Position numbers and translations under genes: made by a program. Shown one piece after another: positions 44,463 to 51,654 of a stretch of 64,000 bases of DNA. Positions within the stretch are counted from its first letter, which is position 1. Every line of letters starts with the position of its first letter. The notes under the pieces are model-generated. The model was not told where the DNA came from. It saw only the letters and a program-made list of their open reading frames with translations, and searched no databases. The stretch lies in sequence record MZ475895.1; one strand, 5' to 3'.

Positions 44463-45059
44463 TTAGACTCTGCCGGTCATAGTAAATTCTTTGCCCGCAG
44501 AGTAATCTCCTAAGGCCGCATAAAGAGAATCACGCAACATCTTCTGAATGATATCCGAGTTATACGCGGACGCGTCGCGGAAAGCGACTTCAACAGTTTC
44601 AGTGCGTGGGTTGATTACAGCATAACGTAGAGGAGCAATCTCCTGAGCGTCACACCACAGATCGACAACGTGCTGTAGTCCAGGCGTCATCTGAATTTTG
44701 AAATCAGACAGCAGGAACACAGCACTTTGAATTGGCGGCGGAGCAGACTGAGAGACAACAGCATTGTCTCCAAGTTTCTCCATAGCCATAGACGCATTGT
44801 ACACTGAGGAGAATTTCGTTTTCAGTGCAGAGGTCTGTACTACCTTATAGCTATTCGATGAAATGCCCTGACGGCGCAGCTTGGCGATACGCACAACGTA
44901 ATCACCAGAATCGTCTGAGGCAAATGCAACGTAAGCGTAGCTCACGAAGCCAGGCTCCTCACTAAGCAGCTTGTGGTCGAGGGCACGAACACCCAAGACA
45001 GCACTAAGTGCCTGTAGGCCCATCTGAACTTCGCGGGACAGAGACACGTACATTTCCAT
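44463..45059 (-). CDS. Hypothetical protein with an SxS leader (start reassigned to MEMYVSLSR)
   Basis: Start 45059 avoids overlap with the lysozyme gene; internal VVSQSA. Confidence 0.6.
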   Translation of the reverse strand: MEMYVSLSREVQMGLQALSAVLGVRALDHKLLSEEPGFVSYAYVAFASDDSGDYVVRIAKLRRQGISSNSYKVVQTSALKTKFSSVYNASMAMEKLGDNAVVSQSAPPPIQSAVFLLSDFKIQMTPGLQHVVDLWCDAQEIAPLRYAVINPRTETVEVAFRDASAYNSDIIQKMLRDSLYAALGDYSAGKEFTMTGRV

Positions 45060-45066
45060 TAGCGAA

Positions 45067-45636
45067 TTATTTAACCCCCACGTGTTTAGCCAGATTGATA
45101 ACGCGAGTAACCCAACCATACACGTTCTCTTCTTGGTCTTCTGACTTCTTCGCCAGATTAAGCAAGAATGCTTTACGCATGGAGTTGAAGCTATCTGTAA
45201 GTACAGAAATGTCACGCACCTTAGCGTACAGGCCTAAGGTCGATAACGTTTTAGGTCCGATGTTTGGTGCAGGCACAAAATCGGGATACAACTTCTGGCG
45301 ATTGTTGAATACGTTCAGCAAGCCTTGAAGCTCCAGCGCAGCAGTACCCGCACCTGAGTTGACTGCATAGTCAAACACATAGATGGCGAGTTCTTCGCTG
45401 TACTTGGCAATGTCATCGCACTTGCACAAGTCCCAATAGTTCTTGGCATAGATCGCTTCTGCGGTTTCACGAGGCAATACTTTCATATCACCCTGATAAC
45501 CATAAGCGCGAGCGACTGGCTGAGTGATACCCCAGCGAGTGGGGCCGCCACGGTCAGCAGCGCGATTTGTGTAACGTTCGCCACCTTCTCTGTCGATAAG
45601 CTCTGAGGTAGCGCGAATAGCTAATTGACTAGGCAT
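45067..45636 (-). CDS. Endolysin, glycoside hydrolase family 108 with a C-terminal PG-binding_3-like domain
   Basis: REGGERYTNRAADRGGPTRWGIT, FDYAVNSG, IGPKTL, GWxxR; start MPSQLA. Confidence 0.85.
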   Translation of the reverse strand: MPSQLAIRATSELIDREGGERYTNRAADRGGPTRWGITQPVARAYGYQGDMKVLPRETAEAIYAKNYWDLCKCDDIAKYSEELAIYVFDYAVNSGAGTAALELQGLLNVFNNRQKLYPDFVPAPNIGPKTLSTLGLYAKVRDISVLTDSFNSMRKAFLLNLAKKSEDQEENVYGWVTRVINLAKHVGVK

Positions 45637-49850: not shown

Positions 49851-49881
49851 AAAAAGAAGGGCCACCATCTAGGCAGCCCTT
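49851..49881 (-). terminator. Intrinsic terminator
   Basis: GGGCUGCC-UAGAU-GGUGGCCC-UUCUUUUU. Confidence 0.8.
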
Positions 49882-49888
49882 GCATGTC

Positions 49889-50335
49889 TTAATATCTACG
49901 AGGCTTCTTAGGCTTCTTGATCGTAGACTTAGGACGCTTGATAGCCCGCAGTGCTTTGCGTGCTTCCACAATTTGTTTGGCTACAGTGGAACGACGAGCT
50001 TTGACCTGGTCTGTATCTTGGTCAGTGCCTTTCAGCTTATCGAGTCTGTTCCATTCTTGCACCAGACGATCAACAACACCAGCACGACCTACGCGTTGCT
50101 GGTTGATGCGCACAATGTCCTGATGAGTCTTCACGGAGTTTTGTGCGTCTTTCTGTTTAGCACGCGCAGATGCAACGTGGTCAGAGTTACCCTCAGCAGA
50201 CTTCTCGTTAAGCTGCTTACGTCTAAGTGCCAGACGGCGTTGCGCTTGCTTGAGTTCGTCTTTGGAGTTCTCCAGTTGCGTCTGCATGTCTTCAAGAGGA
50301 CTTGAGCGTGCGCTCAGACTAACGAGAAGTTCCAT
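49889..50335 (-). CDS. Basic coiled-coil protein with an SxSA leader
   Basis: Start MELLVSLSAR; Arg/Lys-rich. Confidence 0.6.
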   Translation of the reverse strand: MELLVSLSARSSPLEDMQTQLENSKDELKQAQRRLALRRKQLNEKSAEGNSDHVASARAKQKDAQNSVKTHQDIVRINQQRVGRAGVVDRLVQEWNRLDKLKGTDQDTDQVKARRSTVAKQIVEARKALRAIKRPKSTIKKPKKPRRY

Positions 50336-50342
50336 AGGTTCC

Positions 50343-50894
50343 TCACACAGGCTGTATGGTAATGATCTGGACGCCTTGTTCATTACGCGACTTGAGAATG
50401 CGGAAGCGGAAGTCTATTGGATAAATCCATTCGAGTTCATCCATAAGACCATCAAGAATCATCTCACGTTCTTCTTCGTCACCACCGAATTCTTTATCAA
50501 GATCAGCAGCCATGATAAGATTGTACGTGCGTTGCCAATAGTTGAAGGCTTTGTTCTTTGGCCCAGGAAGAATCTCCAGCATCGTGTCTGTCTTGCCTGC
50601 CTTTGCAAAACCTTTAGCAGTAGCGAAGTCTTGACTGAACGACAGGTACTTGTTGATCATCACGAAAGGATTCTTAGCCTGCTTAAACAGAGCCATGAGT
50701 TCTTTTTCGTACAGACCACGATACAGAGGCATCTCAGGACGTTCGGGGTATTTAGCGATCAGATCATCAAGCGCAGGGCTGGAGCGATTAGCGTCAATCA
50801 CATGCCCTTTATCGTGGAGCATCGTCCACATAATGTCTTGCTGTCTGTCGGTGTAGGCAGGTATCTTAGCACTGAGGCTAACCATGAGTTCCAT
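50343..50894 (-). CDS. ADP-ribosyltransferase (R-S-E clade, VIP2/Alt-like) with an SxSA leader
   Basis: LYRG, YLSFSQDFATAKGFA, DELEWIYP (ExE); N-terminus MELMVSLSAK. Confidence 0.75.
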   Translation of the reverse strand: MELMVSLSAKIPAYTDRQQDIMWTMLHDKGHVIDANRSSPALDDLIAKYPERPEMPLYRGLYEKELMALFKQAKNPFVMINKYLSFSQDFATAKGFAKAGKTDTMLEILPGPKNKAFNYWQRTYNLIMAADLDKEFGGDEEEREMILDGLMDELEWIYPIDFRFRILKSRNEQGVQIITIQPV

Positions 50895-50905: not shown

Positions 50906-50933
50906 AAAAGAAAAGGCGGACCGAAGCCCGCCT
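50906..50933 (-). terminator. Intrinsic terminator
   Basis: AGGCGGGC-UUCG-GUCCGCCU-UUUCUUUU. Confidence 0.75.
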
Positions 50934-51022
50934 CTGAGTAATGTGCGCTATGCACTCGACGGTTAAGTCTCCTGCTATTGTTTTACCTCGTTGCAGTAAA
51001 CGAGGAGATAAGGATCACCTCC

Positions 51023-51559
51023 TCAGACGGTACCTAATACTTCAAGCACATCTTCGTCGTCCACACTTGCAGACCACGAACGCATAACAGAAGCATTGCC
51101 GCGATTGCCTGTCAGCATTGATTTAACTGCTGGTGTGGCTTCGATTTCGGCATAGTGTTCCAAGAGAGCTTTGTCATCTTTGAACCACATAATGGAGTTA
51201 CCATCCTTAGGGACGATCAAGAATTGGGTAGGCTTCTGGGTGACGTTTAGCGTCAGGTAGTAATCCCCAGCACCTTTAGGAGTCAGCATCGGCATTGGCT
51301 TCATCGCATACATGAAGTCCTTAGCGTGCATGAGTTTCTGATCGCCGAGCAACCAGATTGCGCCTTCTTCGCCTTGACGCACAGCAGACAAATCGCCTTT
51401 ACGTGTTGCAATCGTTCCGAATACATCTTTATCGAAACGTGACAGACCGAAGATCAGTGATGCGAGACGCTTCAGGTCCGGGGTCGTGCATGGACTGTTG
51501 ATTACAGCCATACCCTCAGACCCAAGTGTGAATTTAGAGAGTGAAATAAAGAGTTCCAT
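51023..51559 (-). CDS. Hypothetical protein with an SxS leader (alternative start 51571)
   Basis: MELFISLSK matches the MELxVSLS starts of the next two genes. Confidence 0.6.
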   Translation of the reverse strand: MELFISLSKFTLGSEGMAVINSPCTTPDLKRLASLIFGLSRFDKDVFGTIATRKGDLSAVRQGEEGAIWLLGDQKLMHAKDFMYAMKPMPMLTPKGAGDYYLTLNVTQKPTQFLIVPKDGNSIMWFKDDKALLEHYAEIEATPAVKSMLTGNRGNASVMRSWSASVDDEDVLEVLGTV

Positions 51560-51590: not shown

Positions 51591-51600
51591 GTAAAATTAG
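51591..51600 (-). promoter_or_regulatory. Candidate late-type motif CTAATTTTAC
   Basis: 32 nt upstream of 51559, after a terminator. Confidence 0.5.
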
Positions 51601-51624: not shown

Positions 51625-51654
51625 AAAAAAGGGCGACCCTTAGGCCACCCTTTT
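51625..51654 (-). terminator. Intrinsic terminator after the clamp loader gene
   Basis: GGGUGGCC-UAAG-GGUCGCCC-UUUUUU. Confidence 0.8.

Follow-up and report, generated by a model that had tools for sequence, protein, structure and literature searches.

The 64,000-nt stretch of sequence record MZ475895.1 analysed here (hereafter the window) encodes, on the minus strand at 50343..50894, an intact 183-aa mono-ADP-ribosyltransferase (ART) of the Mod family (ModA/ModB-like). The first 13 residues of this protein (MELMVSLSAKIPA; 50856..50894, minus strand) form a leader peptide that also begins proteins of unrelated families. By analogy with phage T4, the leader may be a virion-targeting tag on a swappable set of injected effectors, analogous and not homologous to the T4 capsid-targeting sequence (CTS), the best-supported of the explanations considered, although we regard it as evenly balanced. 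The leader was recognized from its presence in at least 11 families, from codon variation, from homologues that lack it and from an AlphaFold2 (AF2) model. The enzyme was identified from its open reading frame (ORF), a match to phrog_832, tblastn, AF2, Foldseek and the presence of PF26816 on its homologues.

The 1.9 kb around the ART gene match Erwinia phage pEa_SNUABM_14 at 100% identity and eight sister genomes at 99%, each of these phages belonging to Snuvirus, a group of jumbo myoviruses of about 264 kb whose host is Erwinia amylovora. Genome-wide counts were made on the 99%-identical RefSeq record NC_061451.1 (pEa_SNUABM_7, hereafter S7), where subtracting 124036 from a coordinate gives the window coordinate around the ART locus.

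A leader peptide on unrelated proteins

The shared N-terminal leader that the first-pass annotation had pointed out was borne out, with the consensus M-x-[ILM]-x-[VI]-S-L-S on unrelated proteins. A degenerate DNA pattern of the leader found five matches in the window against 0.64 expected, a number reached by none of 100 shuffles, and four of the five were true leader starts. Seven proteins of S7 start with the leader, namely gp210, gp209 (the ART), gp208, gp200, gp243, gp253 and gp127 (a Nudix hydrolase), while fewer than 0.01 such N-termini would be expected by chance among 346 proteins according to our own estimate from amino-acid frequencies. Between five and nine true leader starts were found in each of pEa_SNUABM_32 (S32), pEa_SNUABM_1 (S1), Y3, Yoloswag and Dickeya phage JA29. 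The leader is present in the genera Snuvirus, Alexandravirus (S32 and S1), Sasquatchvirus (Y3), Yoloswagvirus and Salmondvirus (JA29). Reversed-pattern controls gave one to four raw matches per genome, and the same pattern search returned zero or one leader match in Lu11, PaBG and phiRSL1, despite their related capsid proteins.

In S7 the leader genes are scattered over more than 100 kb and lie on both strands. The DNA of different leader genes is dissimilar and their upstream regions are unrelated. Leader serines are encoded by TCA, TCT, TCG or TCC in some copies and by AGC or AGT in others, and leucine by CTC, CTT or CTG. The switch between TCN and AGY serine codons therefore indicates selection on the peptide and not on the DNA.

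Several features set the leader apart from the enzyme that carries it. Among 82 cluster representatives of the ART family, it occurs only in the nearest clusters and in one distant member (P0047). Most relatives align from residue 13-20 onwards, and one of them (P0013) starts at the equivalent of residue 14. In the AF2 model, residues 1-7 have a predicted local distance difference test (pLDDT) score below 50 and no secondary structure precedes the helix formed by residues 16-27; structural alignments to other ARTs begin mostly at residues 12-15. As judged from these alignments and the model, the catalytic domain starts at about residue 14 and is preceded by an add-on leader of some 13 residues that is predicted to be unstructured. 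The alternating hydrophobic residues of the leader (M-x-L-x-V-x-L) suggest an edge beta-strand docking on a partner.

Once four short ORFs had been discarded as false, at least 11 unrelated families of leader proteins could be distinguished. Two of these are acidic, the 178-aa protein encoded next to the ART and a protein of about 105 aa with an isoelectric point (pI) of 4.5. Three are very basic: a 148-aa coiled-coil protein, an AKP-rich one (256-277 aa) and another that has at least 300 aa. A Nudix hydrolase bears the leader in five genomes.

The ADP-ribosyltransferase

The R (LYRG), S (YLSFS) and ExE (ELEW) motifs previously read from the 183-aa ORF were confirmed at residues 57-60, 83-87 and 153-156, respectively. 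LYRG (50715..50726, minus strand), on a model strand formed by residues 57-60, contains the catalytic Arg59 and Gly60, which correspond to R73-G74 of ModB in the ModA/ModB alignment. In ModB, R73 is the catalytic residue, and R73-G74 was mutated to inactivate the enzyme (PMC10468400). Family alignments identified YLSFS (50634..50648, minus strand; model strand 84-87) as the S-x-S motif, with S85 and S87. ELEW (50427..50438, minus strand) provides the ExE motif, E153 and E155, located in the model at the junction of helix 140-153 and strand 155-158. When aligned, T4 ModA, T4 ModB and the window ART have R59, G60, S85, E153 and E155 in common. Alignments of 74-76 members of the family show G60, E153 and E155 without exception and R59, S85 and K29 in at least 90% of the sequences. 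K29 belongs to an N-terminal helix motif common to Mod-family ARTs, L-x-x-L-x-H-D-K-x-H, which lies outside the classical R-S-ExE description.

The PHROG profile of the phage ART family phrog_832 matched the protein with an E value of 2.6e-13. In tblastn, annotated modB/ADP-ribosylase genes of T4-like phages matched about 90% of the protein at about 30% identity, with E values down to 2e-6. PF26816 (Mod_ADP_RT in the Atlas) is precomputed on seven of eight close homologues; the Pfam evidence for it is indirect, since a local Pfam search of the ART gave only a sub-threshold DRAT match and did not return PF26816. The ModB cluster was both the best feature match (0.97) and the best structure match in the Atlas, with a template-modelling (TM) score of 0.78. 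The AF2 model, built from a 74-row alignment, has a pLDDT of 92 and a predicted TM score of 0.86. Foldseek matched it with probability 1.00 to solved arginine-specific R-S-E ARTs (HopU1, Tre1, ExoS/T, C3 and Vis). Among viral models, ModA/ModB-type proteins scored TM 0.71-0.78, versus 0.45-0.59 for Alt, VIP2 and MuF-fused types. A PDB sequence search with the ART gave only spurious PPR-repeat matches, and NCBIfam and PADLOC searches returned nothing useful.

Because of these Mod sequence and structure matches and the lack of significant similarity to Alt, the protein is assigned as an intact ModA/ModB-family mono-ADP-ribosyltransferase of the arginine type (R-S-ExE), with predicted activity, and not as an Alt homologue. 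Of the proposal that it is a minimal Alt analogue, the identification as an R-S-ExE ART holds; kinship with Alt did not stand, the structure being nearer to the Mod types. T4 Alt was rejected as the closest relative on the basis of a non-significant BLASTP E value of 0.96, the single 183-aa domain and the lower TM score. A MuF- or portal-fused or polyvalent architecture was also rejected, as the protein stands alone with 183 aa and such fusions are only distant structural matches. The identical S7 protein gp209 is named "RNA polymerase ADP-ribosylase" in RefSeq. The enzyme is a new member of a known family, already annotated, and is ordinary when taken alone.

The variable slot and its surroundings

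The ART gene is flanked by two conserved leader genes with homologues in 57 phage records. Downstream, a gene of the same orientation that starts 7 nt past the ART stop (49889..50335, minus strand) encodes a helical 148-aa protein of pI 10.7, which begins with MELLVSLSAR, ends in a KKPKKPRRY tail and matches phrog_28362 from residue 17 of its long ORF. On the other side, 51023..51559 (minus strand) encodes the 178-aa protein of pI 5.4, which begins with MELFISLSK and matches phrog_31786 from residue 5 of its long ORF; an Atlas search with this protein gave no lead. The run of three genes starting with MELxxSLS described in the first-pass annotation is real, except that the longest ORFs of both ART neighbours begin further upstream, with MNKASR... 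and MDVTMEL.... RefSeq calls in S7, PHROG alignments and orthologues in other genera agree on MELLVSLS (50335) and MELFISLS (51559) as the true starts. Another leader gene of the window, located directly after the endolysin gene (44463..45059, minus strand), encodes a 198-aa protein starting with MEMYVSLSR, and its S32, S1 and Y3 orthologues also have the leader. The RefSeq start of this gene in S7 (gp200; window 44463-45119, minus strand; L007:18499-19155) lies 20 codons upstream and overlaps the endolysin gene. This annotated start is probably too long, because the orthologues begin at the leader (MEMYVSLS, MEIYVSLS or MQIYVSLS).

The content of the slot between the two conserved genes differs among phages. 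It is the Mod ART in Snuvirus, a 43% identical Mod ART in pEa_SNUABM_32, nothing in pEa_SNUABM_1, and an unrelated 256-aa leader protein in Y3. The metagenomic contig L016 carries a Y3-type unrelated leader protein together with an ART, so that four leader genes stand in a row. In JA29, the slot is occupied by gp192 (L068:3863-4540, minus strand), a 225-aa protein in which MELLISLSK is followed by an ART-PolyVal domain (PF18760, E value 2.3e-27, above the curated cut-off). The ART-PolyVal domain was described from virion-packaged polyvalent proteins (PMC5512222). JA29 gp192 is annotated merely as a hypothetical protein. On the short, distant contig L015, a leader-bearing ART is followed by another leader protein. 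Upstream of the slot gene, a non-coding block is preserved irrespective of the gene that comes next. From these gene orders, the slot between the two conserved leader genes is a swappable cassette. The sequence GTGCATAGCGC, upstream of the slot gene, was considered as a general promoter motif and rejected, as it is unique to the ART locus. In the endolysin operon of Y3, the 170-aa leader protein Y3_193 (L011:5313-5825, minus strand) has near its N-terminus an IFYRGL sequence that recalls the Arg motif of ARTs; it had no Pfam or PHROG match.

Upstream of the 178-aa gene, CTAATTT (51594..51600, minus strand), 34 nt before the start at 51559, was identified from motif counts as a putative late-class promoter element. 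In S7, 23 of 52 TAATTT sites are non-coding and lie 22-68 nt upstream of a gene start, against one to nine for 14 permutations of the same composition. The motif precedes the tail sheath gene (according to the Y3 annotation), the PAAR spike gene, baseplate and tail genes and, upstream of the capsid gene, the head operon, as well as the endolysin gene and the gene before the portal gene; no replication gene of S7 is preceded by it. Four of the seven S7 leader genes are in units headed by TAATTT: gp210 and gp253 have it directly upstream, gp200 is in the endolysin unit, and the Nudix gene stands behind gp128, itself a gene with the motif. The same arrangement was found in Y3, S32, L016 and JA29. 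S7 also encodes a sigma-like factor, gp244. A sigma-70 scan did no better than with shuffled sequences.

Terminator-like hairpins on the minus strand part the clamp-loader gene, the 178-aa gene and the unit formed by the ART and 148-aa genes. They are located after the clamp-loader gene (51627..51654), 17 nt upstream of the ART start (50912..50935; kept in six phages with compensatory changes) and at the end of the ART unit (49857..49881). A further hairpin, GAGGAGGUGAUCC..AUCUCCUC (51002..51024, minus strand), spans the stop codon of the 178-aa gene and is invariant in all six phages compared. We take its 5' arm to be complementary over 13 nt to the 3' end of 16S rRNA (a super Shine-Dalgarno sequence). 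Its downstream arm has an alternative pairing with a second stem (CCUCG..CGAGG), and if read from a GTG the hairpin would give M-I-x-I-S-S, which is leader-like. This hairpin might act as a translational operator, as a standby site for ribosomes or as a site of recombination. An Rfam search returned nothing close to the gathering score.

Proposed virion targeting, its rivals and known systems

According to the proposed mechanism, the leader proteins would be made late, be drawn into the assembling particle by the leader and enter the next host along with the DNA, the leader possibly being trimmed by a prohead protease resembling T4 gp21. At entry, the ART would modify a host protein at time zero using nicotinamide adenine dinucleotide (NAD), or NAD-capped RNA as ModB does, and would thus work like T4 Alt while being a Mod-family enzyme. 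In a broader form, advanced tentatively as a little short of even, the leader would be a portable virion-loading and ejection tag of a modular injected arsenal with at least 11 cargo families in jumbo phages of Erwinia, Dickeya and Yersinia. With similar reserve, two unrelated ART classes, a Nudix hydrolase, histone-like basic proteins and DNA-mimic-like acidic proteins are proposed to make up this arsenal. That a recombination-prone slot swaps ART cargo between phages is likewise plausible, at a strength just under that of an even case.

Support for packaging is indirect and comes from the range of cargo, the swappable cassette, the putative late-type promoter motif on several leader genes and the predicted unstructured add-on peptide. 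Precedents exist for both the tag and its cargo. The capsid-targeting sequence of T4 is some 10 aa long, and both the T4 internal proteins and Alt lose small N-terminal peptides by cleavage (PMC9958956). Head packaging through MuF or portal fusions has been independently predicted for phage ARTs and Nudix proteins (PMC9503650), and the leader cargo fits such a set of injected effectors. Moreover, producing host-takeover enzymes alongside structural and lysis proteins would be sensible chiefly if these enzymes travel on to the next cell.

The putative trimming step was considered on the leader proteins and on the protease. A Glu occurs at position 14-16 in families A, B, C, F and G and partly in family E (GSE, PLE, FTE/YTE, QKE/PKE and PSE). 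It could be a prohead-protease site, a weak indication that was noticed post hoc. The prohead protease (L006:12148-12927, minus strand) is gp21-like by annotation alone; a PDB sequence search with it gave no match. Its family has invariant H124 and S181, and an invariant Cys/His cluster (C191, C194, C206, H208 and C229) suggests a zinc-binding insert. Between the protease gene and the capsid operon, outside the window, S7 gp150 (L006:11036-12100, minus strand) encodes 354 aa with a KMPT-N domain (E value 1.8e-17), a Pro/Lys-rich middle part and a HELAH zincin-like motif; from its sequence, it may be a second peptidase or a scaffold-like protein of the head module. A complex prediction for leader residues 1-24 together with the prohead protease and the major capsid protein had a score of 0.01 and counts neither way.

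Several observations weigh against virion targeting. There is no uniform protease site, as some families are without a Glu at 14-16, and the window ART has Asp16, within the conserved first helix of its domain. Comparison by eye found no significant similarity between the leader and MKTYQEFIAE, which we take to be the capsid-targeting sequence of T4 IPII/IPIII. Literature searches on Snuvirus, Alexandravirus, Y3, Yoloswag and the JA and AD1 phages found neither a virion proteome nor a reference to the leader, and the Y3 GenBank annotation flags no protein as detected by mass spectrometry. TAATTT itself may be a late promoter element of this phage clade, a candidate recognized from the genes behind it, and the ART/148-aa unit and gp243 do not have it. 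The ART and 148-aa genes lie behind the terminator-like hairpin downstream of the 178-aa gene, and the locus is surrounded by replication genes (clamp loader, SbcC). Finally, T4 ModA and ModB, the closest characterized relatives, act after expression and are not packaged, which is why the term "Alt analogue" is a functional analogy resting wholly on the leader.

The position of the ART unit among replication genes, its lack of TAATTT and the behaviour of T4 ModA and ModB, which act after expression and not from the virion, are also what would be expected if the ART were an ordinary ModA/ModB-like host-takeover enzyme that is never packaged. The leader would then serve another peptide function, such as recognition by a protease or unfoldase that limits half-life, or binding to a common partner; from its alternating hydrophobic residues, it could be the kind of short amphipathic, strand-like peptide that proteases and adaptors recognize. 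However, the leader genes have no link to an adaptor or to a protease of their own, and four of the seven S7 leader genes are in endolysin units or have the motif of structural genes. In addition, the ART-PolyVal, Nudix and very basic, DNA-binding-like cargo matches proteins known or predicted to be packaged, and N-terminal virion tags have a precedent whereas a shared phage degron has none. We consider this explanation unlikely, though the strongest of the rivals.

The leader could also be a relic of common descent or of cassette recombination in a conserved start region, the peptide having little function of its own. This would suit a slot that adjoins a highly conserved non-coding block and contains an ART, an unrelated protein or nothing, and the fact that several leader genes adjoin one another. 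Yet the leader has low identity as DNA and nonetheless retains its peptide through the TCN/AGY switch, the genes occupy both strands across more than 100 kb, and the peptide is kept across genera when the rest of each protein is down to 43-70% identity. Recombination may explain the spread of the leader but not the conservation of its amino acids, and the relic explanation is improbable. That the conserved start is an RNA or DNA signal (a translation-initiation region or promoter-proximal element) is scarcely credible and largely refuted by codon usage: all copies start with ATG, GAA being mostly the next codon, at a short distance from the hairpins and ribosome-binding sites that precede them, but codons 3-8 differ widely, those for serine even at every base, without a change in the amino acids, and the upstream regions of different leader genes are unrelated.

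Taken together, a short tag selected at the peptide level unites two unrelated ART families, a Nudix hydrolase and several charged small proteins across five phage genera. No description of such a leader-plus-cassette system (two ART classes and Nudix, five genera) was found in the literature consulted. If the tag does load the virion, it would show how jumbo phages outside the T4 and phiKZ groups build an injected "first-strike" proteome, and would be a second capsid-targeting system after that of T4, independently evolved. The possible late synthesis of a ModB-like enzyme would then also be accounted for, and foreign proteins could be packaged by means of a simple tag into jumbo phages used against fire blight and soft rot. 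If confirmed, the leader system would be one of capsid-targeted cargo, its new part being the leader and not the enzyme.

Like T4 ModA and ModB, the window ART is a stand-alone enzyme in a family of about 160-215 aa, with the same R, S-x-S and E-x-E residues and an N-terminal HDK-type helix; its identity is 25% to ModB and 19% to ModA. Unlike them, it has a 13-residue clade-specific leader and is encoded in a swappable cassette between leader genes, not in an early-gene cluster. It belongs to the same ART superfamily clade and the same PHROG (phrog_832) as T4 Alt, and if the leader is a packaging tag it would resemble Alt in its delivery with the DNA and its action at time zero. T4 Alt also starts with MEL (MELITELF), which may be a coincidence. 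In contrast to Alt, the window ART has 183 aa instead of 682, shows no significant pairwise similarity to it and is a putative virion protein.

Like the capsid-targeting sequence of T4 IPII/IPIII, the leader is a short N-terminal peptide on unrelated small proteins, several of them very basic, encoded at loci of variable cargo. It differs in a residue pattern that suggests a strand and not a helix, in having no uniform L/I-x-E cleavage site and in its larger number of cargo families, several of which are enzymes; its function is putative. The cargo also resembles the polyvalent and MuF- or portal-fused effectors described by Iyer et al. (2017, 2022), which include ARTs (among them the ART-PolyVal type found in JA29) and Nudix proteins and are predicted to be injected. 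Unlike these effectors, the leader proteins are separate, small and tagged, and are neither fusions to head proteins nor parts of giant polypeptides.

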